Made by a program: the position numbers and the translations under genes. The notes under the pieces are model-generated. The model had not been told where the DNA came from and did not search any database. It was given only the letters and a program-made list of their open reading frames with translations. A stretch of 64,000 nucleotides of DNA from Rebecca billardiae RCC1528 (Eukaryota > Protista > Haptophyta), in the NCBI GenBank assembly GCA_965240325.2, contig OZ251234.1, forward strand, positions 1,550,001 to 1,614,000, in the 5' to 3' direction. Shown here piece after piece: positions 10,606 to 64,000 of the stretch; position 1 is the first letter of the stretch, and each line of letters opens with the position of its first letter.

Positions 10606-11529
10606 TATTGGGATTACCGCAAGCTCCGAGCGTCTCGAGCCCTGCTAAAAGCTCACCGCGCACGACAGGACGGACGCCACCGCGAGGATCACATGCCTCG
10701 CGATCTCATCAGCTCTCAAGCCTCTGAACCTGGCCCTTATTTCCGGCGCTCTTGCGCCGGGCCAAAACAGCGATCGAGCTCCGATCGCTCCTGGGCTCGG
10801 GGCGGTAGTATCATCGCCGTGCCGACTTACCCAGATTTTGCCGCGATCAGCCAATCGGCGATCGCACCGTCCGTCCTGTTGCCGCTCAACTTTGTACCAC
10901 TGCTTCTCGTCCATGTCCGGTGCTGCTCACCTGCTTTCCTTGGACAAATCCAGTGTACCAGCATGACGCCCGCGCTGCTCCGCGCTGCTCCGCGCTGCTC
11001 CGCGCTGCTCCGCGCTGCTCCGCGCTGCTCCGCGCTGCTCCGCGCTGCTCCGCGCTGCTCCGCGCTGCTCCGCGCTGCTCCGCGCTGCTCCGCGCTGCTC
11101 CGCGCGCTCCGCGCTGCTCCGCGCTGCTCCGCGCTGCTCCGCGCTGCTCCGCGCGCCCCGCGCTGCTCCGCGCGCCCCGCGCTGCTCCGCGCTCCCGCGC
11201 CGCTGCGCCCGCGCTGCTCCGCGCCCGCGCCGCTGCGCCCGCGCTGCTCCGCGCTCGCGCGTCTGCTGCCGCGCGCGTCCTGGACGCGCGCGCTGCCAGC
11301 CACTGCTCCGCAGCAGCTGCTGCCGCCGGCCCGCCTGATGCGGCGCCAGCCCTGACACCCCAGCGGCAACGCCATCTGCTGAGATGCGTGCCCCAGACTG
11401 TGCCAGTTCATCCGCACTGCTGCTCTGCAGCAGCTGCGCCGCCGGTCTGCCTGCTGCAGCACCGGCCCTGACTCACCGCCGGCGACGCCATCTGCTGAGA
11501 TGCGCGCCCCTGGCCTCGTCAGCTCAACA
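10606..11529 (-). repeat. 3' LTR (924 bp) containing a (CGCGCTGCTC)n minisatellite
   Basis: Direct repeat of 14620-15563, with 13 perfect 10-mers at 10971-11100. Confidence 0.95.
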
Positions 11530-12800
11530 CCCCCCCTCGACAGCCATAGCCGCGAGCGAGTAGCGCCGCTCATCGCGCGCGCGTCGGGTGTCGCACACCA
11601 TGATGGCGTCGACGTGCCACTCAAACGTAGCAGCGTCGTCCGTCGCCTTCGTCATGATGTCGGCGTGGTACATTGACCTCACGCCACGTACTCCGCCTCC
11701 GTCGAGCTCAGCTGGGCCATAACCTGCAGCCCGCTGCTGTGCCACGACACCGGCGATCCATTGTAGAAGACAATGATGCAGCCACCCGTCGACCTCCACC
11801 CGGATTCCCCTGGGTTGTTAGACCAAACAGAGTCACCCAAAGTGAGCAAGTCGTCGAGCTCGTCAATCTCCGCGCGCTGGACCAACGCCTTGTCCGCGTC
11901 GGTCAGCCTCGCGCGCGCCGCTGCCTCTGGCAGCCGTATCCGCGTGCTCGCGTTCGTGCCGAATCGCTCGAGCCCGCCATCGATCGCCTCTGCGACCCGC
12001 GGCAACCCGCCCGCATCTGCGCGGCGGTCCCGCGCCAAAGTTGCGCCGGTGGTATCTCATACCACCAGTGCGACTGCGCCCATGGCGCGCCCGCACCGCC
12101 CCGATCGCCGGCCTGCGGCATCGGCGGCTGTGCGCCCGTGCGCCCGCGCTGCTGCGCCCGCGCTGACCCGCGCCCGCGCTGCTGCGCCCGCGCACCTGTG
12201 CTACGCGGCGGCCCGCCAGCATCTGCTGCGGCCCCGCGCCGGGATTCCGTCGGCGGGATCCGACCCTGCCGACCCAGGCTGTGTCGCTGACGCGCCTGCT
12301 CCGCCACGCCCGCCCTGCGGCGTCGGCGTCGACGGCTGTGCGCACGCGCTGCTGCGTCCGCGCGCTGTTCCGCGCCTGCGCTGCCGCGCCCGTGCGCTGT
12401 TCCGCACCTGCGCTGCCGCGCCTGCGCGCTCCGCGCCCGCGCTGCTGCGCTCGCGCGCTGTTCCGCGCCCGCGCTGCTGCGCCCGCGCGCTGTTCCGCGC
12501 CCGCGCTGCCGCGCCCGCGCGCTGTTCCGCGTCCGCGCTGCCGCGCTCGCGCGCCGACGCCGACGCATCTGCGTCGCCGTCGTTCCTGACGTCGAACTCC
12601 GTCGCGTCGTCGTCACCGGCGTCGGCCGGCGGCTCGCCGCCGTCGCCGTCATCGTCCTGCGCCGCGCGGCGGCCCGCCAGCATCTGCTGCGGCCCCGCGC
12701 CGTGATTCCGCCGGCGGTATCTGACCCTGCCGACCCGGCTGCGTCATCGACGCGCCTGTCCCGCCACGCCCGCCCTGCGGCGTCGGCGTCGACGGCTGTG

Positions 12801-14619: not shown

Positions 14620-15563
14620 TATTGGGATTACCGCAAGCTCCGAGCGTCTCGAGCCCTGCTAAAAGCTCACCGCGCACGACAGGACGGACGCCACCGCGAG
14701 GATCACATGCCTCGCGATCTCATCAGCTCTCAAGCCTCTGAACCTGGCCCTTATTTCCGGCGCTCTTGCGCCGGGCCAAAACAGCGATCGAGCTCCGATC
14801 GCTCCTGGGCTCGGGGCGGTAGTATCATCGCCGTGCCGACTTACCCAGATTTTGCCGCGATCAGCCAATCGGCGATCGCACCGTCCGTCCTGTTGCCGCT
14901 CAACTTTGTACCACTGCTTCTCGTCCATGTCCGGTGCTGCTCACCTGCTTTCCTTGGACAAATCCAGTGTACCAGCATGACGCCCGCGCTGCTCCGCGCT
15001 GCTCCGCGCTGCTCCGCGCTGCTCCGCGCTGCTCCGCGCTGCTCCGCGCTGCTCCGCGCTGCTCCGCGCTGCTCCGCGCTGCTCCGCGCTGCTCCGCGCT
15101 GCTCCGCGCTGCTCCGCGCTGCTCCGCGCTGCTCCGCGCGCTCCGCGCTGCTCCGCGCTGCTCCGCGCTGCTCCGCGCTGCTCCGCGCGCCCCGCGCTGC
15201 TCCGCGCGCCCCGCGCTGCTCCGCGCTCCCGCGCCGCTGCGCCCGCGCTGCTCCGCGCCCGCGCCGCTGCGCCCGCGCTGCTCCGCGCTCGCGCGTCTGC
15301 TGCCGCGCGCGTCCTGGACGCGCGCGCTGCCAGCCACTGCTCCGCAGCAGCTGCTGCCGCCGGCCCGCCTGATGCGGCGCCAGCCCTGACACCCCAGCGG
15401 CAACGCCATCTGCTGAGATGCGTGCCCCAGACTGTGCCAGTTCATCCGCACTGCTGCTCTGCAGCAGCTGCGCCGCCGGTCTGCCTGCTGCAGCACCGGC
15501 CCTGACTCACCGCCGGCGACGCCATCTGCTGAGATGCGCGCCCCTGGCCTCGTCAGCTCAACA
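14620..15563 (-). repeat. 5' LTR (944 bp), two extra 10-mer units
   Basis: Direct repeat of 10606-11529. The 20-bp length difference equals two minisatellite units. Confidence 0.95.
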
Positions 15564-20200: not shown

Positions 20201-20587
20201 CGCCGCGTGCAAAGCGCGCACGTACGCGCGCGCCGCGCGCGCGCTCGGCGCGCCGTGCGCGAGGACCCAGCTGGCGAGGGTGACGATGGCGGCGGTGACG
20301 GCCTGCGCGCCGAGCGGCGCGGCCTCGTCGCTCGCGAGCTCGTGCAGCACCCCCTCCGCCTCCTCCGCCAGCCCCTCCAGCACGTGGCACAACAGAGGCA
20401 GGTCCTGGCGGAGTGCAGCGAGAAGTCTCGCGGAAAGACTCGCGGACCAGTCGGGCGCGGCGAGCGCGAAGCGGGCGAACTGGCGCGTCTGCGCACGCGC
20501 CTCCGCGGAGCGCGGGCCGAGCCCGAGCTCGAGCGGCGCGCGCAGCGAGCGCAGCGAGAGCGTGCGCAGTGCGAGCCCGGCGTCGAG

Positions 20588-20634
<47 letters not shown>

Positions 20635-21319
20635 GCCACGCGAGCGCGTGCGAGCCGGCGTCGCCGGCGGCGAGCGCGAGCGCGGGCGCGGCGCGGCGCG
20701 CGCGCTCGGCGTCCTCGGCGCGCAGGCTCCGCCCGGCCCACGCCCATGCCGACGCGTCCGTCAGGTAGCCGAGCAGAGCCACGTCCGAGTCCAGGCCGCG
20801 ACCAGCGCCGAGCGCGCGCACGGCCGCGCACGCGAGGCCGCGGGACTGCGCGAGCCAGCGCGCGGCGGCGGAGGGCGGGGCTGGTGCAGGCGGCGCGCCC
20901 CACGCCGCCGCGCACGCGTTCACGCGCGCGTCCTCGTGCGCCGCGTTCTCGAGCAGCAGCTCGAAGAGCGCGCCGCGCCGCTCGGCGCCCTTCCCGTCGT
21001 CCGGCCGCGCGCCCTCGACGACGAGGAGGGCGCGCGAGAGGCGCTCGAGGGCGGCGGGCGCGGCGGGCGTGCCACTCGCGCCCCGCGCCGCCGCGAGCAG
21101 CGCGTCCCACGCGCCTCGCTCGCGCTCAGCGAGCGCGCGCCGGCACGCCCGCCGGCGCGACGCGCTTTGGATGGCCACGGCCGCGCGCAGCTGCTGCCGC
21201 TGCTGCTGCCGCTGCTCGCGCTCGCGCGCGGCGCGTTCGAGGACGGTGCGCCGATCCTGCTGCTTCGACGAGCCGCGCAGCGTCACTTTGCGCTCGGGCG
21301 CGGCGCCGCCGAAGAACAT
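17249..21319 (-). CDS. HECT E3 ubiquitin ligase, UBE3C/UPL6-like; introns 18410-18595 and 17837-18037
   Basis: N-terminal MFFGG...IQSASR IQ-like motif. HECT motifs [28 protein letters not shown] and [17 protein letters not shown]...GFELS. GT-AG introns restore motif continuity. Confidence 0.93.
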
Positions 21320-21540
21320 GCCTGGCGCGGCGGACGAGGACCCACCCGCGCGCGTCCTCCCTCTCCTCGGCAGGCAATGTCGGCCCTGTCCCGCCCGCTC
21401 CGGCGACCAGCTCTCGAGCCGGACCGGGCCAAGCTGACGAATCGCGAAGCCCAAGCTTTGAGCTTTCCGAGGATCCCGCCCGACTCCCCGAGCGAGCTCA
21501 GGTCGCCCGCCATCGCTCGGCCGGGCGGCGCAAGCGCGCC

Positions 21541-24500
21541 ATGAGCAGCCTCGGGCCGACGAGCCTATGGCTCGAGCGGGCGACGAGGCGAGTGCTCAGC
21601 GAGCCCAGGCACGGCTTCATCGACGAGTACGCCGACGCCGACGACGAGACCGTCATCCCGTGGCGCATGAAGGACCGGATGAAGACTGTGTCGGTCGCGC
21701 TCGTGCTCTGCCTCAACATCGGCGTCGACCCGCCCGACGTGATCCGCACGCAGCCGTGCGCGCGGAATCTGTGCTGGATCGGTGCGCGTGGCGCCCCTCG
21801 GCGCATGCCCCTGCGCGCGCGCGCGCGCGTGGGTGCGTGGGCGTGCGTGGGCTCCGCGCAAGGCTGGGCTCGAGACACAGCGAAGGCGCGCAAATGCCCG
21901 CTCGCCGGGCCTCACACACCCCGCGCATGCTGCGCGCGCGGCGCCGATGGTGCAGACCCGCTCTCCATGCAGCCGCAGAAGGCGCTCGAGGCCATCGGCA
22001 AGAACCTGCAGATGCAGTACGAGCGCTGGCAGTCGAAGGCGCGGTACCGTCAGCTGCTCGACCCGACGCTCGACGACGTCAAGAAGCTGTGCCTCGCGAT
22101 GCGCCGCGGCGCGAAGGACGAGCGCGTGCTGCTGCACTACGCGGGGCACGGCGTGCCGCGCCCCACCGCGAACGGCGAGATCTGGGTCTTCAACAAGAAC
22201 TACACGCAGTACATCCCGCTCGCCGTGTACGACCTGCTGCAGTGGCTCGGCTCACCGCTCATCCTCGTCGTCGACTCGTCCGCGGCCGGGCTGATGATCG
22301 ACGCGTACAGGGGGATCGTCGCGCAGCAGGCGCAGGCCGCGGCGCACCTCGGTGCGCAGCCGCCGCCGCCGCCGGAGTCGCGCGAGGCGGCAGAAGCGGC
22401 CATGGGTGCGGGCGCGGCCGGAGCGGCTGGCAGCCAGCTGCACGGCGGCGGCGGCGCGCAGGCGCACGCGCGCCTTGCGCACGCGCACCTCAACGGCCAG
22501 CGAGCGCCGTCCCCGCTCGTCGGGCAGGCCGCCGCTGCGGGCAGCCCTGCAGGATTCGCGCAGCGGCGGCCGCAGCAGCAGCCGCAGCAGCAGCCGCAGC
22601 AGCAACCGCAGCAGCAGCAGCAGCCGCAGCCGCCGCCGCAGCAGCAGCAGCAGTCCACCGCGCCCGCGGCGCAGCCGCCGACGTCGCAGCAGCAGCCGCC
22701 GCCGACGTCGCAGCAGCCGCCGCAGCCGCCGCAGCCGCAGCCGCACTCGGTGCCGCGCCGGCCTGCGGAGAGCAGCGTGGTCATCCTCGCCGCGTGCGCG
22801 TCGCACGAGTCTCTCCCGTCGAGCCCCGAGCTGCCGGCCGACCTGTTTACCGCGTGCCTCACGACGCCGATCCACATGGCGCTGCGCTTCTGCTGCGCCT
22901 CGCCGCTGTGCTCCGTGAGCCCCGAGCTGATCGAGCGCATCCCGGGCCACCTGAGCGACCGGCGCACGCCGCTGGGCGAGCTCAACTGGATCTTCACCGC
23001 GATCACCGACACGATCGCGTGGAACTCGTTGCCGCGCGCGCTCTTCCAGCGGCTCTTCCGCGACGACCTGCTGCTCGCCTCGCTCTTCCGCAACTTCCTG
23101 CTCGCCGAGCGCATCGGCCGGTACCACCGCTGCACGCCCGTGTCGCTGCCGCGGCTGCCGCCCATGCACCACCACCACATGTGGGACGCGTGGGACCTGG
23201 CGGCCGAGGCGTGCCTCGCTCAGCTGCCGTCGCTGCTGGCGCACCGGCCGCCTGGCGCTGAGAAGCCCGCCTTCCGTCTCTCCTCCTTCTTCGCCGAGCA
23301 GCTCAGCGCGTTCGAGGTGTGGCTCCGCTTCGCGCCGCGCGGCGTGCGCCCGGGGTCGGTGCCGGAGCAGCTGCCGATCGTGCTGCAGGTGCTGCTCTCG
23401 CAGACGCACCGGCTGCGCGCGCTGCTTCTTCTCGGAAGGTTCCTCGCGATCGGCCCGTGGGCGGTCAACCACGCCCTCTCGGTCGGGATCTTCCCGTACA
23501 TCCTCAAGCTGCTGCAGTCGCCCGCGGCCGAGCTGCGCGTCGTGCTCGCGTTCATCTGGTGCAAGATTGTCGCCCTCGACCCGAGCTGCCAGGCGGACCT
23601 GCTCAAGGACTCGGGGCACGTTTATTTCCTCGCGTTTTTGCAGGCGACGACCGCGCTGGGCGGCGGCGGCGGCGGCGGCGGCGCGGCCGCGCAGGGCGCG
23701 GCGGCGCTGGGGCCGCGCGCGGGCGCGGCGGCGGGCGCGGGCGCCGCGCCGCCCGCCGCTGGGTGCGCGGGCGCGCAGCAGCCCGCTCACGCGGCTGGCG
23801 CGGCCGCGGCAAACGGGCACGGCGGAGAGGGCGGCGCGGCTCGGACCCCCCACGCGGCGCCTCCGCACCGGCCGCCCGCGCAGCCGCAGCCGAGCGCGCA
23901 GCAGCCGACGCCCGCGGCGCCGTCCGTGCAGCTCCCGCCGTCCGCGCAGTCACCGCTCGCGCGCACGCTCGCCCTCTTCGTGCTCTCGCACATCTGCGAC
24001 CACTCGCCCGCGGGCCAGCTCGCGTGCCTCCGCCCGCCGGACGGGCGGGCGTCGCTTCTTGCGCTGTGCGTGTCGCAGCTTGAGCTCGCGGCATCGCCGC
24101 CGCTGGTCCGGCAGTGGGCGTGCCTCTGCCTCGGCAAGCTCTCCGAGGGGTGCGGCCAGGCGCAGAGAGAGGCGCGCGCGCAGCACACGGCCGCGCGCGT
24201 CGCCCAGCTCCTCTCGGCCGACCCGTCGCCGGAGGTGCGCGCGTGCGCGCTCTTTGCCATGCAGCGGCTCGTGGGCCTCACGGATGAGCTGGAGGGTGCG
24301 GGCGGCGGCGCGGACGGCCCGGCCGGTGGCGGCGCTGCTGGCAGCGCGGGCGCGGGCGGCGCGCCGAGCGCCGGGGCGAATGCGTGCGCGGCCGCGGCCC
24401 ACGCCGAGAGCGCTGGCGTCGGCGGCGAAGAGCCCTTCGCCTCGGGCGCCGAGCCCTCGGCGAGCGATGCGCGCGTGATGATTGCGTGCACGGCCGCCGA

Positions 24501-27500
24501 CGCGTGCGCGCGCGACGCCTCGCCGCTGGTGCGGCGCCAGCTGGCGATGCTGATCACGAGGCTCGCGCTGAAGCAGCCGTCGGCGTTTCAAACCCCCGCG
24601 GCGGCGGTGGCGACGCCGTCGAGCGGCGGCGGCGCGTCGTCCTCGGCAGCGGGCGCGCGCTCGCGCACGCCGACGCGTGGCAGCAGCGCGTGCGCCGCGC
24701 ACGCGCTCGCGCACGCGCACGCGCAGCCCGCCGGTGCCGGTGCGATCGCGGCGCCGCCGTCGCTGAGCGTGCACGTCGGGCAGCACGGCGGCGCGCCCAT
24801 GTCGCCGCGCTCGCCGCACGAGCGCGCGCTCGCGAACGTGCCAGAGGCGGAGACGGCCTCGCACCCTGACGGCGGGCGCGAGGTGCGGCGTGGCGGCGGC
24901 GGCGCGGACGCGAACGGCGCTTCGCGCGCGGCCGGGTGCGTCGGCAGCCTCGGCAGCAGCAGCGCCGGCAGCGCGCCGCGCGCTCATGGCACGTACGACG
25001 GCGTGGGCGCGCACTCGACCGCGGCGGCGCGGCGGCGCGAGCAGCTGTGCCGCGCCGCGCTCGCGCTCGTCAACGACCCGATGCCCGCCGTCGCCGCACC
25101 GGTGCGCGCCAGCCTGGGCGACACGTGGGTTGCGGAGAGCGCCGCCGCCGCGGGTGTGAGCACGCCAAGCACCCGCCGACGCTCCGGGAGCGTCGCAGGG
25201 TTCTCGACGGAGCGGCGCGGCGCCGACTCGGCGGGCAGCCACGGAACCGCCGCCGCCGCGCCGCCCAACGCCGCGGCGGCTGGGGGCGGCGGCGGCAGCA
25301 GCGCGAGCGGCAGCGTCGGCACGTCGGCGCACGCCGGTTCGGTCGGCCCCGCGCCCGGCGCGCCGACGCCCCTCGGCCTGACGCGCGCAGAGTCGCTGCG
25401 CACGCTGCGGCATGACTCGAGCCTGGCGGGCGGCGCGGCGCTGCCCGCGCCGGGCGGCTCGCGCGGGCTCCGCTCCTCCGCCTCCGCCGCCGCCATCTTC
25501 AGAGGCGGCTCCGGCGAGGCCGGGCAGGGCGCGCTCGGCGCGGACGCTGGCCGTGCGCCGCCGCCGCCAAGCCCGAGCGAGGCGGCCGCTGTCCACGACG
25601 ACCTGTACCTGTGGTGCGTGCGCCGGTTCGCGCGAGTGATGCCCGTGCTCGACGCGAGCGGCAACCTGATCTCGCGGGAGGAGGCGGATGCGATGGACGC
25701 GGCGGAGGGCGGCGGCGGCGGCGCCGACGGCGGCGCGGGCGGCGCGGGCGGCGCGCAGGGGGCGGCGCCGCCACAGCTTGCACCCCACCGGCCAAGTGCC
25801 GACGTCGTCTCCTCGTCGCGCTCCTCGCCCGGCGGCGGCGGCGCGCCGCCTGCCTGCTCGGCCGAGCTCGGCACGCCGCCGTCCGCCGTCGGCACGCAGC
25901 CGGCGAGCTCGCATGCCTCCGCGTCGGCGCGCGCGTTCGGCGCGCGGCAGTCGCAGCCGCCCTCGCCTGCGCCGACCGCCAGCGCGCACAAGCGAGGCAC
26001 GCCCACGCGCACGTCCGCCTCGGCCGGCGCCGAGTGGGACAACCTGGCCTTCGAGCACGAGGTGCGTGCGCGGCGGGAGCGCGGGCGCGCGGAGGCGCGC
26101 GGAGGAGTGCGGACGCGTGAGGGCGCGCGGCGCGAAGGCCGAGAGCGCGGGCGGGCGGGCGGGCGGGCGCCGCCCGCGGCCGCACCCGAGGCCGCGCGGC
26201 CGACGCGAGGCGCTCGGCGCACCTCGCTCACGCGCGCTGCGCCCCGCGTGCCGCGCCGCGCCGCGCCGCGCTCCCTCCGGGCGCGCGCTCGCCTCGTGTC
26301 ACGTCCGCCGCCCCCCGCGTGGACCCGCGTGCGCGCCGCGGCGCCGCGCGTGACTCCGCGCCGCATGCGTGGCCGCGCGCGCGCGCAGCTCGCGGTGCTC
26401 GACAGCAAGTCGTCGGCCAAGGTCGGGCGGTGCCTGTTCCACCCGAGCGCGCCGCTGCTCGCCGTGTGCGACTCGCGCGACACGATCACGGTGTGGGCGT
26501 ACGGGCAAGGCCAGTGCGCGCGGGTCAACCAGTTCAGCTGCGGCGGCGGCGGCGGCGGCGCGCTGGTACGCGTGAGCACGCTCGCGCTGGTGAACGAGGC
26601 TGATGGCGGCTCGGGCGCCGGGCCGCTGCTGCTCGCGTGCACGGATGACGGCGCGGTGCGCGTGTGGCGGCAGTGGTGCGCGCGCGCTCGCGCGCGCGCA
26701 AGCCGTCCGCGCGCGCGCGTGTGCGTGTGCAACCCAGCGCGGCGGCTGACCCGCCGCACGGCGCGCCGCGCGCCCTCTCGTCGCTCGCTCTCGACTCGCA
26801 GGGCCACGCCCTCGCACCAGACGCTCGTGACCGCCTTCTCGGCGATCGAGGACGACGTCGGTCTCGGCGACACGCCGAGCGGTGTGCCGTGCGTGCCGCC
26901 CTCCGCCTCCTCCGCCTCCGCCTCCGCGCCGCCGCCGCGCGGGACCGTGTGCCTCTGGAGCCAGCGGCGCGGGCAGCTGCTCGCGTGCGCGCGCGGCACG
27001 CCCGCGCCCGTCATCTCCGTCTGGGACCTGGAGGCGGAGCGCTGCGTGCAGCGGCTGCTCACCGGGCCAGACGGCGCGGGGCAGCACGTCACCGCGCTCA
27101 GCGAGCTGGGCAGCGGGCTCTCGCCCGCCGTGCTCGCCGCGGGCGTCTCGAGCGGCTCGATCCGGATCTACGACCTGCGCTCCGGCTGCTACTCGTCGCA
27201 CGCGACACTCGGCGGCGCGGGGCGCTCCGCCATCATCTCGCTGCAGGCGCAGGCGGACGACGCGCCCGGCGCGCGGCCGGGCGGCGCGTGCGCGCCGCTC
27301 GTCTCCGGCTGCGCGGGCGGCACGGTGCGGCTGTGGGACCTGCGCACGTGGGCGGCGCACACCACCATCGACGCGCACCGCGGCTCGATGTCGGCGCTCG
27401 CGCTGCACGACAGCGCGCCGGTGCGCCGCCGCGGAGCCGCCGCACGCCGCCGTCCTGCGCGCACGCGCCGCCGCGCGCCACGCGTCGTGGACTGCGCCGA

Positions 27501-27780
27501 TCCCCGTCGCGCCATACCGCCCCGCGCGCGCGCCATCTCCGCCGTGCTGCGCCCCGCCCCGCCCCGCGCGCAGGTGATGGCCTCGGGCTCGCGCAACCAG
27601 TTCATCAAGGTGCTGAGCCTGAGCGGCGAGACGCTCAACCACATCCGGTACCACGACGGCTTCCTGGGCACGCGCATCGGCCCGGTCACGTGCCTCGCCT
27701 TCCACCCGACCGAGCGGCTGCTGGCGGCCGGCGCGACCGACTCGATCGTGAGTATCTACTCGTGCGCGCACCGGAGGTGA
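21541..27780 (+). CDS. RPTOR: RAPTOR/KOG1 (TORC1 subunit); introns 21782-21955, 26062-26388, 26676-26801, 27421-27573
   Basis: RNC motifs [49 protein letters not shown] and [14 protein letters not shown]; HEAT repeats; WD40 end [22 protein letters not shown]. Splicing gives CWIDPLSM. Confidence 0.97.
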
Positions 27781-28145
27781 GCCCGCCCGGCTGCCTCTGT
27801 GCCACAGCGCCTTCATGCGCGCACGGCACCGATGACGCGGATTACGGGCGATACGGCATACACCCAAGGCCGAGTATGAGTAGATCGTATCTATAGGTAG
27901 CTACTACTGCTCGTCGATGATGATAAAGATCGCGGGCGCGGGCGCCGGCGCCCGCGCCGGCGCCCGCGCCAGCGCCCGCGCCGGCGCCGGCGCCGGGCTC
28001 GCGCGGGCGCCCGCGCCGGCGCCGGCTCCCCCGGGTAAATTCGTCATGGTTAATTTACCCGTCAGTAATGGCGGAGACGATAATACGTACGTCGTACTTG
28101 CCGTGGTCCCCTGCGCCCGGCTCCGTCACGCTCCAGACTGCGTCG

Positions 28146-30818
28146 ATGAGCGCGGCCGTTGCACGGCACCGCCGTTCCGCCCATGGCGCGCCGCCCCGCC
28201 TCGTGCGTGCTCTCGCCGCGCTTCTCGCATGCGCGCTCTCGTGCTCGCTCGCACGCGCGCAGCTCGCGCACGGCGAGCCGGTTGCTGCGCCGGCAGCGAG
28301 CGACGGCGGGGCGCGCGGCGGAGGCAGCGCAGCGGGCGACGCGCCCACGGAGGCGGGGCGCGAAGCCCTCGTGATTGGCATTAGCGCCTACGCCAAAGAT
28401 CCCCTCACCAACCCCGGCAACGATGCCACTGACGTTGCCGCTGCCCTCGAGCTTCTGGGCTTCCGCGTGCTCCTGAAGATCAACTGTGCACTTGACGACT
28501 TCGAGGAAGCTCTCGGCACCTTTCAGAGCCGACTCCGCCCGGGCACAGCTGCCCTCTTCTACTTCTCCGGCCACGGCTGCGAGTTTGAAGGCCACAATTA
28601 CCTTCTGCCCGCTGACTGGCGCAGCGGCGGCAGGGACACGACGCTTCGTCGCCGCGCCATCTCTGCGCAGGAGGTGCTCAACAGCATGAAGGTGCGTGAG
28701 AGTGGGATCAACATCATCATCCTCGATGCTTGCCGATCGCAGTACAATGGCGTCGTCCGGTCCACCCGGGATGCCCCCGCTGGTCTCGTGCCCATGCTGC
28801 CCCCTGATATGCGCGATGGGGGCACTGTCATCGCCTATGCCACTGCGCCTGGTGCTGTCAGCTTTGATAGCGATGGACAGTTCGGTCGCAATGGCATGTA
28901 CACCACGCACTTGCTGCGACACATCACCACCCCCGGGCTGCGCGTGGTGGACATGCTGGACGAGGTGGCTTTCTCCCTGCGCGAGGCGGTAGCGAAGCTC
29001 AGCCACCACAGCAAGCGGTTCGAGCAGCAGGTGCCGTGGGTCAACAGCGCATGGAGTGCCAGGCAGGCCAAGAACTTCTGCCTCGCAGGCATTGCTGCAC
29101 CTGATGACACACCTCATCGCCCGACTGGCCAGGGGGCTGTCGACGACCTCGAGATGGCGGGCTCCATCGCTCCTCTGGTGCAGCTGCTACACGGCGCCAC
29201 TGCAGGCGACCGAGAGGCAGCCGCTCGCGCACTCTGGAACTTGGCTGTGATGAACAATAGCAACAAGGTGGCCATCGCGCGGACTGGCGCCATCGCGCCC
29301 CTGGTGAAGCTGCTGGGCGACAGAAGTGCAGGCGTGCGCAGGGCAGCCGCTGGCGCACTGGGGACCGTGGCTGGAAGCGCTGACAACCAGGTGGCCATCG
29401 CGCGGGCTGGTGCCATCGCTCCGCTGGTGAAGCTGCTGGGCGACAGCACTGCAGGCGTGCGAGAGGCAGCCGCTAGCGCGCTGGGGAGCGTGGCTGGGAA
29501 CGCTGACAACCAGGTGGCCATCGCACGGGCTCGCGGCATCGCTCCGCTGGTGAAGCTGCTGGGCGACAGCATTGCAGCCGTGCGCGAGGCAGCCGCTGGC
29601 GCGCTGCGCGACGTGGCTGGGAGCACTGACAACCAGGTGGCCATCGTGCGGGCTCGCGCCATCGCTCCGCTGGTGAAGCTGCTGGGCGACAGCACTGCGG
29701 GCGTGCGCGAGGCAGCCGCTGGCGCGCTGGGGAGCGTGGCTGGGAACGCTGACAACCAGGTGGCCATCGCACGGGCTGGCGCCATCGCTCCGCTGGTGGA
29801 GCTGCTGGGCGACAGAAGTGCAGGCGTGCGCGAGGCAGCCGCGAACGCACTGGGGAATGCGATGCGTGGGAACGCTGACAACAAGGTGGCCGTCGCGCGG
29901 GCTGGCGCCATCGCTCCCCTGGTGAAGCTGCTGGGCGGCAGAAGTGCAGGCGTGCGCGAGGCAGCCGCCAGAGCGCTGGGGAACGTGGCTGGGAGCGCTG
30001 ACAACCAGGTGGCCATCGCACGGGCTGGCGCCATCGCTCCCCTGGTGAAGCTGCTGGGCGACAGCAATGCAGGCGTGCGCAGAAACGCCGCTGCCACGCT
30101 GGGGAATGCGATGGCTGGGAACGTTGGCAACCGTGTGGCCATCGCGCGGGCTGGCGCCATCGCTCCCCTGGTGAAGCTGCTGGGCGACAGCTCGGCAGGC
30201 GTGCGCGAGAAAGCAGCTGCCGCACTGGGGAACCTGATGGCTGGGAACGCTGGCAACAAGGTGGCCATCGCGCGGGCTGGCGCCATCGCTCTGCTGGTGA
30301 AGCTGCTCGGCGACAGCACTGCTGGCGTGCGCAAGGCAGCCGCTAGCGCGCTGGGGAACGTGGCTGGGCACGCTGACAACCAGGTGGCCGTCGCGCGGGC
30401 TGGCGCCATCGATCCCCTGGTACGGCTGCTGGGCGACAGCACTGCAGGCGTGCGCGAGGCAGCCGCCAAAGCGCTGTGGAACGTGGCTGAGAACGCTGAC
30501 AACCAGGTGGCCATCGTACGGGCTGGCGCCATCGCTCCGCTGGTGAAGCTGCGGGGCGACAGCACTGCAGGCGTGCGCGAGGCAGCCGCTGGCGCGCTGG
30601 GGAACTTGGCAGTGAGCAATGTTGAAAATCACGTGGCCATGGTGAGGGCAGGCACCTTCCTTCCAGTGGTGAAGCTGTTGGGCGACAAGAATGCACTCGT
30701 GCGCGAGGCAGCAGCTGGCGTGCTCTGCAGCTTTTTGGTCGCGATCGCTGAGCCAGCTGGTGTGATCGTTCTTATTTCGCTTTACGCCTGGAGGGTCATT
30801 CACTCATTGCAGGAATAG
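28146..30818 (+). CDS. Caspase-family (Peptidase C14) protease with predicted signal peptide, about 13 armadillo repeats and a hydrophobic C-tail
   Basis: Motifs ALVIGISAY, LTNPGNDA, FYFSGHG (His), IILDACR (Cys), IAYATAPG and QQVPW. ARM units GAIAPLVKLL...VREAAAxALxN. No introns seen. Alternative ATG at 28068. Confidence 0.92.
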   Translation: MSAAVARHRRSAHGAPPRLVRALAALLACALSCSLARAQLAHGEPVAAPAASDGGARGGGSAAGDAPTEAGREALVIGISAYAKDPLTNPGNDATDVAAALELLGFRVLLKINCALDDFEEALGTFQSRLRPGTAALFYFSGHGCEFEGHNYLLPADWRSGGRDTTLRRRAISAQEVLNSMKVRESGINIIILDACRSQYNGVVRSTRDAPAGLVPMLPPDMRDGGTVIAYATAPGAVSFDSDGQFGRNGMYTTHLLRHITTPGLRVVDMLDEVAFSLREAVAKLSHHSKRFEQQVPWVNSAWSARQAKNFCLAGIAAPDDTPHRPTGQGAVDDLEMAGSIAPLVQLLHGATAGDREAAARALWNLAVMNNSNKVAIARTGAIAPLVKLLGDRSAGVRRAAAGALGTVAGSADNQVAIARAGAIAPLVKLLGDSTAGVREAAASALGSVAGNADNQVAIARARGIAPLVKLLGDSIAAVREAAAGALRDVAGSTDNQVAIVRARAIAPLVKLLGDSTAGVREAAAGALGSVAGNADNQVAIARAGAIAPLVELLGDRSAGVREAAANALGNAMRGNADNKVAVARAGAIAPLVKLLGGRSAGVREAAARALGNVAGSADNQVAIARAGAIAPLVKLLGDSNAGVRRNAAATLGNAMAGNVGNRVAIARAGAIAPLVKLLGDSSAGVREKAAAALGNLMAGNAGNKVAIARAGAIALLVKLLGDSTAGVRKAAASALGNVAGHADNQVAVARAGAIDPLVRLLGDSTAGVREAAAKALWNVAENADNQVAIVRAGAIAPLVKLRGDSTAGVREAAAGALGNLAVSNVENHVAMVRAGTFLPVVKLLGDKNALVREAAAGVLCSFLVAIAEPAGVIVLISLYAWRVIHSLQE
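29155..30740 (+). repeat. Homogeneous 123/126-bp coding tandem repeat (ARM array)
   Basis: The unit gccatcgc(g/a)cgggctggcgccatcgctcc(g/c)ctggtgaagctgctgggcgacagc recurs with few changes. Confidence 0.95.
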
Positions 30819-31435: not shown

Positions 31436-32076
31436 GTCAAGATTCGCCTGTTGAACAGATTGCAAACAAGGTCTGAGATATCGAACATTCTTTTGATAGA
31501 TAGTCGTTCACTCCTCATATTCATCAAGCGACGCGAGATGTTATTGCGCGGGTAGTCCGAACCGACGTTCCCGCGCGCTCTCATATCATACGGCTATCGA
31601 GCTACTGACTTGCTGATATACTCTTGGTCATCTGCTGATACGACGTCAATATGTGTCAAGATTCGCCTGTTGAACAGATTGCAAACAAGGTCTGAGATAT
31701 CGAACATTCTTTTGATAGTCGTTCGCTCCTCATATTCATCAAGCGACGCGAGATGTTATTGCGCGGGTAGTCCGAACCGACGTTCCCGCGCGCTCTCATA
31801 TCATACGGCTATCGAGCTACTGACTTGCTGATATACTCTTGGTCATCTGCTGATACGACGTCAATATGCGTCAAGATTCGCCTGTTGAACAGATTGCAAA
31901 CAAGGTCTGAGATATCGAACATTCTTTTGATAGTCGTTCACTCCTCATATTCATCAAGCGACGCGAGATGTTATTGCGCGGGTAGTCCGAACCGACGTTC
32001 CCGCGCGCTCTCATATCATACGGCTATCGAGCTACTGACTTGCTGATATACTCTTGGTCATCTGCTGATACGACGT
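31436..32076. repeat. Three tandem ~215-bp AT-richer units
   Basis: Units start gtcaagattcgcctg at 31436, 31655 and 31870. Unit 1 carries a 4-bp GATA insertion. Confidence 0.96.
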
Positions 32077-32958
32077 TGACCAATACTAATAGTGCGGGTG
32101 GTAATCCATATATCGGCTTATTGTATTGCGCAGGTGATAGATCTCTTTCAAACCCGATATTTCGTTCTTTGAAGATCGAGCTACGCGCGCCCGCGCTCGC
32201 TCGAAGACTGCCACGGTGACTGTGCGGGTGGGCTCTGCAGGGCCGCACCGCTGCGGACCCGTTGCAAGCGTGAGCGCCGAAAAAACGACACTTCGGCGGC
32301 CTAGAGTGACGATACAGTCTTGCAGGCGGCGGCGGCGGCGGCGGGAGCGTGACAGTGCGTCTACCATCACATTCCGTCTAGCGCGCTACGCCGCGCGTGC
32401 CGGGTAGTGCCCCCGGCCCGCCGCAGCAGCAGCCTCGACAAGTGAAGAGACGATGACCGCGGACGCAGTGCCGCCGAGTACAGCCTGCATCCACTTGCCG
32501 CGCGGCGCGCACTGTAGTTGCACTTGCAGCGCTCGCGCTCGGCGAGCATGGGCGTGCGCTCAGGCGTGTCAAGTGCTGTCTCGTCGGCGCGCTTTCGCCT
32601 GCCACCTCGTGCACCCGTGCACGCAGCTTCATCGTCTTCATGAGGACTGCTGTGCTGCTGTCGCCATCACCCGAGTCCGAGTCGCGCGCGGCGCGCGCGG
32701 TGGCAGCTGTGCACCGCAGAGTGTCACCGCTGCTGCTTCGCAGCAGTCATCAGCAGCTGCGTCGTCATCCTCCTAGTCGTCGGCTTCCACTGCCGCAAGA
32801 GGGAACGCTGCCAAAGCTGCAGTTGGGAGGCAAGCCCTTCTCTCTTCCCACCGCGGCGCGCGCGCTGCGACAGCCCTCCCCGTTTCCTTCTCTTGACCAC
32901 CTGCTGAGGGTTTTGCAGCTCGATCTCGGCAACGGCAGCACCTGGCGACGAACGGATT

Positions 32959-40045: not shown

Positions 40046-43000
40046 AGGGTGAGCAACTCCGCTGGCGACAGCCGCGGAGGTCGGTCGGGCTCTGTTTGCC
40101 TCGGCGCCCGGTGCGAGCGGAGCGGAGCGAGTACTACTACTCGGGCCGGGGGTTTGGTGGTAAGGATTTTCCGAAAAATCGGCGGCCGCTTTTTCGGAAA
40201 ATCGCGGGACTGTGGCGGACGCGATCCATGCCGCACGACGGTGATGGCCGCGCCGGGGGAGGACGCGGGACCGGAGGTGCAAGCAGGCCGCAGCTGCGAT
40301 TGTTGCGTTGATGGGACGGGCGGCGCGGCGGCCAATGCGCCGGCCCATGATCCGGGCGATACCCGGATGTCGAGACCGGGGCACAACTTCCCGAGCGGGT
40401 GCCGTAGGAGAATCAGCACTGCTCACACGTAGCGAGCATTGCCCTTGGTCTTGTTCGCGCGGGGATCAATCTGGCCCACAGCTTCGCGATGCTGCGCACT
40501 GTGGGCCAGGTGATGCAGGCTTTCCAGTTCGCCGAACTCAAGAGGACTGCTCGCACTGCCAAGGCTTGGGCCTGTACCGCGGTGGTGCTCGGCGGACCTG
40601 ATCCAAAGCCACAGCTGTGGTTTGACCTCGCGGGCGTACATGGCAAGACTGTATGGTCGCAAGGCCATCGATGTGAACGTGTGCACGGCACCACTCTGCC
40701 ATGCTTCAACTCGTCTGGGTCGAGCTGAGGGCAATCATTCGTGCCCGGAGCATCTGTCAGGCGCGCGTGCATGCATGCGCGCTGCGCGCCGCGCTGCGGC
40801 CCGCGGCTACAGCTCCTGTCACCTTAGCAGATATCTAATGCTGACCACCCCTTTGCGCATCCTGCAGTAGGCTGTGACAGGTGGGCCTTTCGCGACTGCG
40901 CCCATCGTCATCATGTCGCCGTGATCATCTGTCAGCAGCTGATCGTCGAGTCGTCTGCAGCTGGTCAGACTGTCCGCCCGTCCGCCGGGCCCGGCCTCAG
41001 GCTCAGGCTGCTCTCGATCGGGCTGGCGCCCAGCTCAAGTGCTAATAATCTTCGGCTCACACGTAGTCACATATCCGGCGGCAGATGGCAGCAGTGGGAG
41101 AAACAAGTCTCACGCGCAGGCTCAGCTGATGGCCGCCGAGGCCAGCAGTGCGTCAAAATCGTCAGTATAGTAGTACGCGTAGCATCATCGTCAACGGTCA
41201 GCGACTACTCATAGTCATACTGCATCCCGTCGACTCGTCCTCAGCCGCCGGTTGCGCCTAGGAGCGGGCGCAGCGTCGCCCTGGCGACCTCAACTGCAGG
41301 CCAATCGCGTCGGGCGGCAGCGGGGGCAGCATGATGAACGCCAAGTCGACGAGTGCGAGATTTGCCGCTGGCGCCTCGCCCGCCGCTGGCCGCGCAGCAC
41401 TCTCAGGGATGACTGCCGGCAGCGCGCGCAGCTCTGAGCTCACCGGCGATCAGCGCGCGCAGCTCATGCGCGCGCGCTGACCGGTGAGCGTGCCCGCGCC
41501 CATCGCGCGGACGAGCGCGGCGTAGGCCGAGAGCAGTGCGGCTCTCCGCACGTGCGTGTGCTTCGCCAAGCCCCGCGCGAGCTCGAGCTACACGCCGTGC
41601 GCAAGCCGAGCTCCGAACCGCATCGCACGCTTGAGATCACTACGCGACAGAACGCAGAGGTCGGTGAGGCTTTCAGAGCGGCGCTCACTGAGGCGGCTTG
41701 CGCAGGGCGTAGCTCGGCGAAGCGCTACTGGAGATGAATGCCTGTCCCCGAGACGCAAGCCACGACATGTCTGTCAACTGGGACAGCACACTGAGGGAAG
41801 CATCAGCTGCGAGGTCAGGGTGTCTACTGCCAGACATCTGCCAGTAGAACGCCTCGCGCCCCACCTTCGTGCCAGCTGGGCCGAGCAGGTAGCAGCAAGA
41901 GTTCGCGCAGTACGGTATGGCAGCGTCCACGAACGGCGAGAGGGTCGCCCACCCGCCATGTACTTGGATCGACAGCTCGGCGCACGCGCTGAACGATTGG
42001 AATTGTCCTCCTGCGTGGACGGCAGCTTGCGCGCCTGCTTGCCCGCGGCGGGAGCAAGCACGACGGTGGCGCACGCAACAAGGATCGACACCACGCTCAT
42101 GGCGAATGTTTGCCGTCCTCCGCCTCGCCGCTCGCATCCGATTTGCGGCCGATTCGGCGACGTGCAGATGGGCGGCATGGCGCAGCCTCGCGGCCTGGTG
42201 AGCCATATGAGCGCCCGCTCCCAAGTACCCGTAAGGTATTGACACATAGGAGCCGGCTTCATAGGCGACTCGCCTTTGAATAGCAGCTGCCTTCATAGGC
42301 GCGCGCTCAAAATAGCGCACGCCGACGAAGCTGAAACAGTTTGTTAAAGTTACAAATTTCGCTACCGCCAAACCCCCGGCCCGAGTAGAGCGGCGGAGGG
42401 CGCTGAGGCCGCGCACGGCGTGAGGCGCGGCGTCGGCCGAGTCGGTCTGCAGAGGATGCGCGGCGCTCGGCCCGCTGCGCAGCAGCAGTGTGCCTCACTT
42501 TGCCCCGAGCGCCGTCCTCCGCGTCGCCTCCTTCCCGCCTTGGAGCAGCACGCATGTGCGCGCCGCCACCTCGAAGGCGGCACGGGCTTGCTCAGACGAC
42601 CGCGCGCGCGTGGCGCGCGACTCGGTCGACTGCGCGCGCGCGCTGCCGCGGTGCAAGGTAGCGCCACCCCATACGCGCGCCGTGCCCGCGCGTGCCTTTG
42701 CTTACGGCCATCTCATGAGCGTAGTGCTCGTTTGTCTGCTTGCTCTCACGAATGGTTCGCTGTGCCTCACGCCAGCGCTCGTCGGTCGATCAGCGAGGTG
42801 TTGAGTGACATTGGATACCCATGACGAAGGCCTAGCCGTGTGTACCATTCTCAGCACGAATGCAAGCGGACGCTATGGCTCCGCATCGATGGTACCAACA
42901 CTCACGCCGCTGTCTTTTCCAGCTTCACGTCACTCAACACTAGTCGGATGCGCAAGCAGCATTAGACATGTGTGTGAGCTCGCACTCACGTCCGCGCACA

Positions 43001-43403
43001 CGCTCTCGCAAGGCCACGGCGCGCGTATGAGGTGGCGCTACCTTGCACCGCGGCAGCGCGCGCGCGCAGTCGACCGAGTCGCGCGCCACGCGCGCGCGGT
43101 CGTCTGAGCAAGCCCGTGCCGCCTTCGAGGTGGCGGCGCGCACATGCGTGCTGCTCCAAGGCGGGAAGGAGGCGACGCGGAGGACGGCGCTCGGGGCAAA
43201 GTGAGGCACACTGCTGCTGCGCAGCGGGCCGAGCGCCGCGCATCCTCTGCAGACCGACTCGGCCGACGCCGCGCCTCACGCCGTGCGCGGCCTCAGCGCC
43301 CTCCGCCGCTGATAGTACTCGCTCCGCTCCGCTCGCACCGGGCGCCGGGGCAAACAGAGCCCGACCGACCTCCGCGGCTGTCGCCAGCGGAGTTGCTCAC
43401 CCT
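40046..43403. mobile_element. Foldback-type element (~390-bp arms, 330-bp spacer), left arm interrupted
   Basis: 40046-40136 plus 42389-42684 is the reverse complement of 43015-43403. Both ends are flanked by TA (40044-45, 43404-05). Confidence 0.85.
40140..42385. mobile_element. TA-flanked TIR element (2246 bp), Tc1/mariner-like ends, nested in the foldback arm
   Basis: TIR CTCGGGCCGGGGGTTTGG(T/C)GGTA at both ends. TA at 40138-39 and 42386-87. Absent from the opposite arm. No transposase recognised. Confidence 0.85.
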
Positions 43404-45595: not shown

Positions 45596-50063
<4,468 letters not shown>

Positions 50064-57851: not shown

Positions 57852-57994
57852 GCTGAGCTGCACGCCTTGCTCGGTGTCCATTCCAGCACCCCCTCACGGT
57901 TGGTTCCCGTGCGCGCCCGCCCGCCATTCATTCCCCTGGTCTACCGGTCCGCCAGCTCCACCTGCCTGCCCTCCATCGGGCGGCCCGTGGCGAC

Positions 57995-63778: not shown

Positions 63779-63910
63779 AGCTCAGCATGGCGGCCGGGGA
63801 CGACTATCGCCCCACGTTCAGCGGAGCCCACGCGCTGTGGTCTCAGCTGACTGCCGGCGTGCTCGACGCTGGCGTCCCAGCTCAGCCGCCACCGCCGGTA
63901 TCTGCGCCCC
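63779..63910 (+). repeat. 132-bp inverted copy of 57728-57859 (5' end of the RRM gene); ORF open from ATG 63787 to the window end
   Basis: Near-identical reverse complement, encoding MAAGDDYRPTFSGAHALWSQLTAGVLDAGVPAQPPPPV. Confidence 0.93.
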
Positions 63911-64000
63911 CGACGCGAGTGCTCTTCCTGCACGCCATTGCCTGTCGATCGACAGGCCGCGTCCGCGCGGCACCAGTGCCGCCACTCGGCGTCCGCCCGG

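Follow-up and report, generated by a model that had tools for sequence, protein, structure and literature searches.

An armadillo-repeat array with a variable groove joined to a paracaspase- and orthocaspase-like protease in the haptophyte alga Rebecca billardiae

The haptophyte alga Rebecca billardiae (strain RCC1528) carries, on contig OZ251234.1 of assembly GCA_965240325.2, a gene that joins a protease of peptidase family C14 to a long array of armadillo (ARM) repeats. We describe this gene, C14-ARM, within a stretch of 64,000 nucleotides (positions 1,550,001 to 1,614,000 of the forward strand of the contig), referred to here as ‘the window’; all coordinates are positions within it. According to a list of open reading frames (ORFs), the coding sequence is a single exon at 28146..30818 on the plus strand and specifies 890 amino acids and a stop codon, with the Pfam families C14 and Arm matched in the same frame. 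The protein begins with a targeting-like segment (residues 1-38; 28146..28259, judged from sequence, hydropathy and the AlphaFold 2 (AF2) model), followed by a disordered, acidic linker rich in Ala, Gly and Pro (residues 39-68; 28260..28349). The caspase-fold domain comes next (residues 70-310; 28353..29075, identified by Pfam, AF2, Foldseek and phmmer), and then a second linker (residues 311-338; 29076..29159). ARM units 1 to 12, of 41-42 residues each, with units 2 to 12 as the highly similar core, occupy 29160..30650 (Tandem Repeats Finder, Pfam, AF2 and identity matrices). Finally, a degenerate unit 13 passes into a hydrophobic tail (residues 836-890, core at about 859-877; 30651..30815, from hydropathy and AF2). 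The full-length AlphaFold model has a mean predicted local distance difference test (pLDDT) score of 87.5. It arranges the chain as a low-confidence helix (residues 17-40), disorder (35-68), the protease (70-310), disorder (315-335) and a superhelix (340 to about 860); pLDDT is below 50 in both disordered stretches.

The frame agrees with an original prediction, made from the letters alone, of an intronless ORF at 28146-30818, and no stop or frameshift interrupts its 890 codons. It is open on the plus strand over 28068..30818 (916 codons), and the Met at 28146 is Met27, the second in-frame Met. Use of the in-frame ATG at 28068 would lengthen the protein by 26 residues; by eye, positions 28040-28140, between the two candidate ATGs, are relatively AT-rich and resemble a leader or untranslated region. 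Because a Raptor-like gene on the same strand stops at 27780, with a characteristic C-terminal WD40 sequence, the 5' end of C14-ARM lies within a gap of about 300 bp that leaves no space for an upstream coding exon. Exact look-up in protein collections recorded neither the 890-residue nor the 916-residue protein, and tblastn detected no second C14 or ARM cassette within the window. Long ORFs on the opposite strand of the array (501 and 538 amino acids) were set aside as by-products of GC-rich repeats. The GC content at third codon positions (GC3) of C14-ARM is 0.76 (28146-30815), versus 0.81-0.94 in the HemD, exostosin, RRM protein, DUF350 and FTR1 genes and the Raptor C-terminus of the same window. 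The low value fits weak expression or a different history and proves neither.

The protease domain matches Peptidase_C14 (PF00656) over residues 74-301 with an E-value of 1.3e-28 and a score of 100.7 bits, against a cut-off of 21.4. As predicted, the SGHG/DACR dyad is intact: SGHG (residues 141-144) and DACR (194-197) contain the catalytic residues His143, in FYFSGHGCE (28572..28574), and Cys196, in ILDACRS (28731..28733). Alignment with 40 relatives shows both to be conserved (His invariant, Cys in a nearly invariant column), and they correspond to MALT1 His415 and Cys464. An AF2 model built on these 41 sequences is a confident caspase fold with a six-stranded sheet (pLDDT 88, predicted template-modelling score 0.89). 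The profile score, the His–Cys dyad and the caspase/hemoglobinase fold place the protein in family C14. Within this family it is nearest, by sequence and by fold, to the paracaspase MALT1 and to bacterial orthocaspases, not to metacaspases, a leaning that had earlier been read from motifs. The top Foldseek matches of the model are MALT1 (E-values 1e-16 to 1e-17, template-modelling (TM) score about 0.72, identity about 22-24%). Weaker fold matches, with TM scores of 0.57-0.61, are caspase-9, caspase-7, GSU0716 and metacaspases, all with probability 1.00; metacaspases alone score 0.57-0.58 versus 0.72 for MALT1. In a phmmer search of the PDB, MALT1 chains were the only solved structures matched by the C14 sequence (E-value 1e-14), and no metacaspase chain appeared at E<=1.

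The resemblance to human and mouse MALT1 extends to the substrate pocket and to the overall build. Three candidate S1-pocket residues, Asp93 (28422..28424), Asp194 (28725..28727) and Asp241 (28866..28868), align with MALT1 Asp365, Asp462 and Glu500, as counted in the HMMER alignment. We take these MALT1 residues to be the acidic S1 pocket that selects Arg. All three are conserved in the relatives, the first two as invariant and the third as nearly invariant Asp, and from the alignment the C14 domain probably cleaves after Arg or Lys. Like MALT1, the domain has a single-chain fold without a metacaspase-type p10. MALT1, however, becomes active on BCL10 filaments and includes a death domain and Ig domains, whereas C14-ARM has an ARM array instead. 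Pfam detected only C14 and ARM/HEAT-type families in the protein, with no death domain, Ig domain or P-loop NTPase family, and no domain of any kind in the N-terminal 71 residues, the place of the Pro-rich or zinc-finger prodomain in type I metacaspases. A p20-type C14 domain is shared with phytoplankton proteins that Choi and Berges reportedly described in 2013 as ‘metacaspase-like proteases’.

An exhaustive search of 1.84 billion representative proteins with the C14 domain returned 35,736 matches. The closest, P0121, is a metagenomic protein of 227 residues with 64% identity; all others have 49% or less. Among the best are cyanobacterial (Microcystis) and other orthocaspase-type proteins (38-49% identity), many with C-terminal accessory domains: FGE-sulfatase, Sel1, PEGA, peptidoglycan-binding, WD40, tetratricopeptide (TPR), ankyrin (ANK) and GUN4. 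C14-ARM thus resembles the orthocaspases of the Microcystis aeruginosa MaOC type in its p20-type domain and in the presence of a C-terminal extension, but ARM is not among the accessory domains found, the neighbouring genes (Raptor, exostosin, HemD and an RRM protein) are those of a eukaryotic nucleus, and its clade occupies its own long branch with its own motifs. The C14 domain phylogeny that had been proposed as a check bears this out. In a maximum-likelihood tree of 60 C14 domains, C14-ARM and ten metagenomic proteins form a group of 11, drawn up after the alignment had been viewed, with support of 100 in the Shimodaira–Hasegawa-like approximate likelihood ratio test. The long branch of this group is nested among orthocaspase-type sequences with bacterial-type accessory domains. 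In common with P0121, P0133 and P0155, C14-ARM has several clade-specific features: GHGCE following the catalytic His, the motif DACRS, an inserted segment ahead of the fifth strand, and an end of the form PWVNS...AK..L.

The members of this clade carry different repeats. P0001, P0003 and P0298 combine MLKL_N, C14 and leucine-rich repeats (LRRs); P0159 combines MLKL_N, C14 and ankyrin; P0155, C14 and ankyrin; P0133, a weak MLKL_N, C14 and MORN; P0153, MLKL_N, C14 and DUF285; and P0145, MLKL_N and C14. Fusions of C14 with LRRs are documented in P0001, P0003, P0298 and one member of A3. MLKL_N, a four-helix bundle, is matched at the N-terminus in most of the clade, every match lying below the Pfam gathering score and therefore weak. 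P0298 is clearly eukaryotic, since its 36-kb contig (L070, a metagenome scaffold from ENA) also carries SMC, SHPRH, SAC9 and PNK3P genes. Other members lie on short contigs with essentially one gene. The MLKL_N–C14–LRR gene at 10001-12163 of L070, on a compact eukaryotic contig, is a good entry point to the clade in a second organism. On the contig of P0121 (L001, 577-1706), the P0121 ORF ends at 1260 and an ORF for a coiled coil and RI-type LRRs starts at 1242 in another frame, overlapping it by 19 bases. The change of frame could reflect a frameshift, a sequencing error, an intron or two genes, and we do not count this contig as a C14–LRR fusion because the ORFs are in different frames.

No Arm domain stands beside C14 in any of 120 word-indexed C14 matches, 65 scanned matches from the exhaustive search or 120 ARM-array matches. 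A metagenome scan with the C14 domain yielded 65 loci, mostly from soil and all with 46% identity or less, with neither a closer relative nor an ARM fusion among them; P0121 surfaced in the exhaustive protein search alone. A caspase–ARM fusion other than C14-ARM was thus found in no protein, metagenome or ARM-array search. Viral contigs scanned with the C14 alignment gave only matches of 39% or less, so nothing suggests that the gene is carried by, or was captured from, viruses. Klemencic and Funk, in a 2017 review, describe algal ‘metacaspase-like proteases’, their term for the eukaryotic counterpart of orthocaspases, as consisting of the p20 domain only, with additional domains confined to prokaryotic orthocaspases (PMC5756287). 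The clade of C14-repeat proteins is an exception to this description.

The array is an ARM solenoid by each measure applied. Pfam finds Arm (PF00514) in 11 stretches (E-value 1.5e-93), with many HEAT/ARM-type families overlapping them, and Tandem Repeats Finder reports a 123-bp period at 29156-30724 with 12.6 copies and 84% matches. We delimited 13 units of 41-42 residues (123-126 bp), the last one degenerate, in agreement with the earlier count of about 13. In the AF2 model, each unit consists of three helices (pLDDT 95-98), and the units stack into a confident superhelix, so that the array has the tandem three-helix units of about 42 residues by which ARM proteins are defined. Its best solved matches are designed ARM proteins (4rv1, 5mfd, 5aei and others), Vac8 and ODAD2. 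The predicted near-identity of the repeats at the DNA level was an overstatement. Units 2 to 12 are 75-96% identical in DNA and 61-95% identical in protein (mean 76%), and only 6 of the 55 pairs reach 85% or more. The units most alike are not adjacent: units 3 and 5 are 96% identical in DNA, and units 3, 5, 7 and 10 are mutually 89-92% identical. This pattern suggests that units have been reshuffled by unequal exchange.

The units align residue for residue with those of importin-alpha and of designed armadillo proteins. Columns 20, 23 and 27 of the unit alignment correspond to Glu30, Trp33 and Asn37 of the designed-armadillo consensus, in what we take to be the numbering of those positions. 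Asn is largely kept, occurring at column 27 in 9 of the 13 units. The Trp position, by contrast, varies among Gly, Ser, Asn, Arg, Ala and Lys, with small residues in the majority, and the Glu position is mostly Ala. With Trp and Glu changed, a classical nuclear localization peptide rich in Lys and Arg is an unlikely ligand. In ARM proteins generally, it is helix 3 that forms the peptide pockets (PMC11228518).

Across the units, 16 of the 41 columns are invariant, while synonymous sites vary. Column 23, the ‘x’ of the AAxAL motif, whose variability had been predicted, is the most variable of all: it has six residue types in units 2 to 12 and the highest entropy, followed by columns 14, 36 and 27. 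Events giving rise to distinct residues are not significantly over-dispersed among columns (variance/mean 1.21, P=0.16). Eight groove columns fixed before inspection nevertheless take 19 of the 46 events (P ~0.001 versus random column sets). The ratio of nonsynonymous to synonymous change (omega), estimated from a per-column minimum-spanning-tree count of codon changes among units, is 0.75 overall, 1.43 in groove columns and 0.57 in the others. Nonsynonymous events are over-represented in the groove columns (binomial P=0.002). Column 23 alone gives P=0.03, uncorrected. Uniform variation over the repeat, which had been named beforehand as fatal to the original prediction, is thus not what the units show, and helix 3 is favoured as expected, if modestly in this gene alone. 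The comparison of dN/dS across repeats delivers the groove excess but does not demonstrate diversifying selection, the groove value being not significantly above 1 (P=0.08). Groove variation combined with recent homogenization at the DNA level is an unusual feature.

The best database relatives of the array are ARM arrays of other algae fused to other domains, and none of these is a caspase. They include MLKL_N, kinase and ARM in Chrysophaeum taylorii (CTAYLR_004470), PARP and ARM in metagenomic proteins, HET and ARM in Pleodorina starrii, kinase and ARM in Aureococcus, and arrays in Chrysochromulina proteins. Seven proteins (P0300, P0306, P0307, P0310, P0323, P0355 and P0391), from pelagophytes, chlorophytes and unplaced metagenomic sequences, join internally similar ARM arrays to MLKL_N plus kinase, PARP, HET or kinase, and their variable positions fall on the helix-3 groove columns. 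The ARM cassette was expected to recur on other effectors, and related arrays do occur with kinase, MLKL_N, PARP and HET; the nearest C14 relatives, on the other hand, carry LRR, ankyrin, MORN or DUF285.

With a profile made from the C14-ARM units, we drew the units from 16 algal ARM arrays. They are 41-42 residues long and 44-56% identical to those of C14-ARM. Unit identity within a protein is 0.68-0.81 in 13 of the 16 arrays and 0.50-0.52 in the other three, versus 0.44-0.56 to the C14-ARM units. Because they are mostly more alike internally than to the C14-ARM array, these arrays were expanded or homogenized independently. Their most variable columns are 31, 20, 26, 23, 36, 27, 11, 16 and 30, of which eight lie within nine binding columns of designed armadillo proteins (hypergeometric P 7e-7), a set that was refined after the data had been seen; with the earlier eight-column set, the overlap is six of eight (P 1e-4). 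The entropy profiles of C14-ARM and the 16 arrays are correlated (Spearman 0.51, P 5e-4). C14-ARM therefore belongs to a broader class of algal ARM arrays, with a conserved scaffold, a variable groove and attached enzymatic or death-type domains, that is apparently undescribed; we found no description of such a class, or of ARM as a receptor-type repeat, in the literature searched.

The window is very rich in GC (56-82%). Its recognizable genes are those for an FTR1 iron permease, Raptor, an exostosin (GT47), an RRM protein, a DUF350 protein and HemD (uroporphyrinogen-III synthase). The best named relative of HemD is in Pavlovales sp. CCMP2436 (60% identity), followed by cryptophytes, Prymnesium and red algae. 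In the pavlovophyte Diacronema lutheri, the genome has 73% GC and 45% of genes have a single exon (PMC8379373). The HemD relatives and the base composition thus point to a haptophyte, probably one of the Pavlovophyceae. The Raptor-like gene (20413-27780, plus strand) contains the RNC-domain sequence YAGHGVPRP and C-terminal WD40 repeats. Its frame is open for 2455 codons across low-complexity inserts of 78-82% GC (poly-Q/P and poly-Ala/Gly/Arg), which may be in-frame introns or real insertions, and it ends some 290-365 bp before the start of C14-ARM. The RNC domain of Raptor is itself caspase-like; its position beside a C14 gene is probably a coincidence.

Directly downstream of C14-ARM, at 31436-32143, lie three tandem 215-bp copies, two of them 99-100% identical, in a stretch of 47% GC. 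In the approximately 23 kb from 31000 to 54000, none of 20 tested ORFs of at least 150 amino acids has a Pfam match, and neither a transposase nor a reverse transcriptase was found. The same region contains two inverted repeats, one of 304 nt (42389-42692 / 43007-43310, 99%) and one of 97 nt (40040 / 43313), together with a direct repeat of 74 nt (38016 / 38770) and, at 47378-47517, an (AT)n tract about 140 bp long. Placement of the gene at the edge of a transposable-element island, another element of the original prediction, is neither supported nor excluded by this mixture of non-autonomous elements and repeats with no transposon protein in 20 ORFs. Rfam has no match in the window. Further away, 10606-11560 and 14620-15560 are 100% identical direct copies, about 4.0 kb apart, around GC-rich satellite-like sequence with a 16-bp period; they could be a pair of long terminal repeats, a segmental duplication or an assembly artefact. 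The two arms of a 135-nt inverted repeat (57725-57859 / 63779-63913, 98%) lie where the minus-strand RRM and HemD ORFs have their 5' ends, and the repeat may be a mobile or regulatory element common to both.

Taken together, the alignments and models show C14-ARM to be a single chain in which an apparently catalytically competent, MALT1/orthocaspase-type protease is connected by a flexible tether to a 13-unit ARM solenoid. How might such a protein work? The helix-3 groove keeps the Asn that binds peptide backbones and varies the neighbouring side chains, and we infer that it would bind an extended peptide. Binding in the groove could either recruit a substrate to the protease, or release or oligomerize the protease and so activate it by proximity. 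MALT1 and initiator caspases are activated by proximity. Once active, the protease would cut after Arg or Lys. The array itself would have grown, and would stay similar, by duplication of units and exchange between them. Such a sensor protease is plausible but unproven from the sequence data, and the role we would assign to it, in regulated cell death or the sensing of biotic stress, has in our estimate a rough probability of 0.45. Two things make this role our best guess: sister architectures show weak matches to MLKL_N, HET and PARP, and fungal and bacterial proteases with repeats that trigger pore-forming effectors set a precedent (PMC8851545).

That precedent is instructive. Fungal HET-Q2-like proteins and their bacterial counterparts join S8 or CHAT proteases to TPR, ANK or WD40 repeats and activate gasdermins (PMC8851545). 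As in C14-ARM, a caspase-clan (or subtilase) protease and a solenoid share one chain, and the proposed task of the array is to detect a signal and permit the cleavage of a cell-death effector. C14-ARM differs in having C14 proper rather than CHAT or S8, ARM as its repeat, and no recognizable effector gene, gasdermin-like or other, next to it; MLKL_N is matched only weakly, within the chains of some relatives. A second comparison is with fungal NOD-like receptors (NLRs), whose WD40, ANK and TPR repeats can be highly conserved internally, by a criterion of more than 85% identity over at least 100 amino acids (Dyrka et al. 2014, PMC4986451). Here too tandem units are similar, the scaffold is conserved, the predicted binding face varies, and the units most alike are non-adjacent, but C14-ARM has no NOD/NTPase, its mean identity of 76% falls below that criterion, and ARM is not among the repeat types reported. 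C14-ARM is not categorically new. The protease-plus-solenoid design was known; the combination of ARM with C14 proper in a eukaryotic alga is new.

Several observations weigh against a sensor protease. The protein is not an NLR: an NTPase domain is lacking, and the linker between protease and array is only about 28 residues. It contains neither an MLKL_N nor a death-fold domain, and no gasdermin or other recognizable effector gene was found nearby, in Raptor upstream or the 20 ORFs downstream, where divergent effectors would escape detection. A signal peptide, if real, would make the protein lumenal or extracellular, at odds with cytosolic sensing. For an ARM protein that binds peptides, a groove consensus made up mostly of Gly, Ala and Ser is unusual. 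Groove omega does not significantly exceed 1, and in C14-ARM taken alone the groove enrichment is weaker than in the 16 arrays, with groove columns making up just 3-4 of the 8-9 that vary most (Mann–Whitney P 0.002-0.006). Moreover, any solenoid with a fixed, non-repetitive partner should vary on its binding face, so that the pattern alone is not diagnostic of an immune receptor. As to the clade, the group of 11 was defined with the alignment in view, so its clustering is not an independent test, and the label ‘eukaryotic’ rests on one contig with context and on the architectures.

The strongest rival follows from the same points. C14-ARM could be a housekeeping or developmental protease whose array is a scaffold or exosite for one endogenous partner; differences between units would then match different residues of a single ligand, similarity between units would reflect recent expansion and gene conversion, and no surveillance would be involved. 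An overall omega of 0.75, a groove omega not significantly above 1 and a near-Poisson spread of events per column are all compatible with this. The solved structures that match the array best (Vac8, ODAD2, importin-alpha and beta-catenin) likewise all belong to housekeeping proteins, and the gene itself lies among housekeeping genes (Raptor, exostosin and HemD). A conserved housekeeping gene should have orthologs, however, and three very large protein or contig collections yielded none, the closest C14 domain being 64% identical and no caspase–ARM protein being present. In addition, the C14 relatives swap repeat types, and most weakly match MLKL_N, a domain of the cell-death executioner type; similar ARM arrays are joined to HET, PARP and MLKL_N; and the GC3 of 0.76 is below the 0.81-0.94 of the neighbours. 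On balance, we consider a fixed endogenous partner somewhat unlikely.

Where the protein resides is a question separate from what it does. Both ends of the chain are hydrophobic, as had been foreseen. The N-terminus reads ...RLVRALAALLACALSCSLARA followed by QLAHG, and its first 43 residues include six Arg and no acidic residue. After the Arg-rich start come 15 uncharged, hydrophobic residues (ALAALLACALSCSLA) and then ARA immediately before Gln39, the h-region and AxA site of the original prediction. AF2 places residues 17-40 in a helix of low pLDDT that does not pack on the domains. By its sequence, this segment fits a signal peptide or a signal anchor. We set aside a plastid or mitochondrial transit peptide, since the linker that comes next has a net acidic composition and the hydrophobic residues before it do not form an amphipathic stretch. 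At the other end, hydrophobicity over 19 residues reaches the maximum for the protein in the segment that begins at residue 859 (Kyte–Doolittle 2.43). The AF2 model has tail helices at 850-871 and 874-889 that continue the end of the solenoid while pLDDT drops from 84 to 56, and it is compatible alike with a C-terminal solenoid cap and with a membrane anchor. The tail sequence VAIAEPAGVIVLISL resembles VAIARAGAIAPLVKL, the helix 1–helix 2 segment of a unit (protein score 26), but its DNA is no more similar than shuffled sequence (20 versus 16.7 +/- 2.4), as regards descent from a decayed 14th repeat.

From these features one could picture a secreted or membrane-anchored protease, extracellular or vacuolar, with a cleaved signal peptide and a C-terminal anchor, acting for example against attached bacteria or in the turnover of wall or scales. 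The basic N-terminus with its hydrophobic stretch and A-x-A, the hydrophobic tail, and the helical ends that AF2 does not pack confidently would all suit such a location, as would Gln at +1, since import into complex plastids expects an aromatic residue there. Nevertheless, ARM solenoids and C14 proteases of this kind are, to our knowledge, typically cytosolic, and N-termini rich in Ala, Leu and Arg arise easily at a genomic GC of about 70%. The solenoid continues through residues 850-871 at a pLDDT of about 80, the last eight residues of the tail are polar, a weak MLKL_N match precedes the protease in several close relatives, and P0121 begins directly at C14. We regard a secretory location as unlikely. 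That C14-ARM is instead a young, drifting or non-functional fusion of an orthocaspase-type domain with an expanding, satellite-like ARM array under little selection would accord with an omega near neutrality, the absence of orthologs in the collections searched, a codon bias weaker than that of the neighbours and the 23 kb without recognizable genes downstream, but 890 uninterrupted codons, an intact dyad and pocket, 16 scaffold columns that stay invariant while synonymous sites change, and the very high confidence with which AF2 models both domains make it barely credible.

If, as we favour, C14-ARM is a sensor protease, it may also be one of a larger set. Algae of the sea and of fresh water might possess a family of single-chain sensors for immunity or cell death, lacking an NTPase, in which a homogenized solenoid with a variable groove (ARM, LRR, ANK or MORN) is wired to a death-type effector (a MALT1-like protease, MLKL_N, HET, PARP or a kinase). 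C14-ARM would be the protease/ARM member of this family, its specificity re-programmed by exchange between repeats, and a peptide from a pathogen, viral or bacterial, would switch on Arg-specific proteolysis. We think so general a scheme unlikely as it stands.

Caspase homologues of phytoplankton are often invoked in the collapse of blooms under viral attack or stress. The proteins described here indicate that some algae couple C14 proteases to large repeat arrays and possibly, on the evidence of weak matches, to executioner domains of the MLKL type, a design logic common to the fungal and bacterial proteases that trigger cell death. They also point to ARM arrays as a receptor-type class of repeat alongside LRR, WD40, TPR and ANK. 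Even if the array does no more than serve as a scaffold, family C14 gains a new architecture. Provided that its ARM groove acts in recognition, C14-ARM would offer a concrete protein with which to test how an alga turns a trigger into proteolysis.

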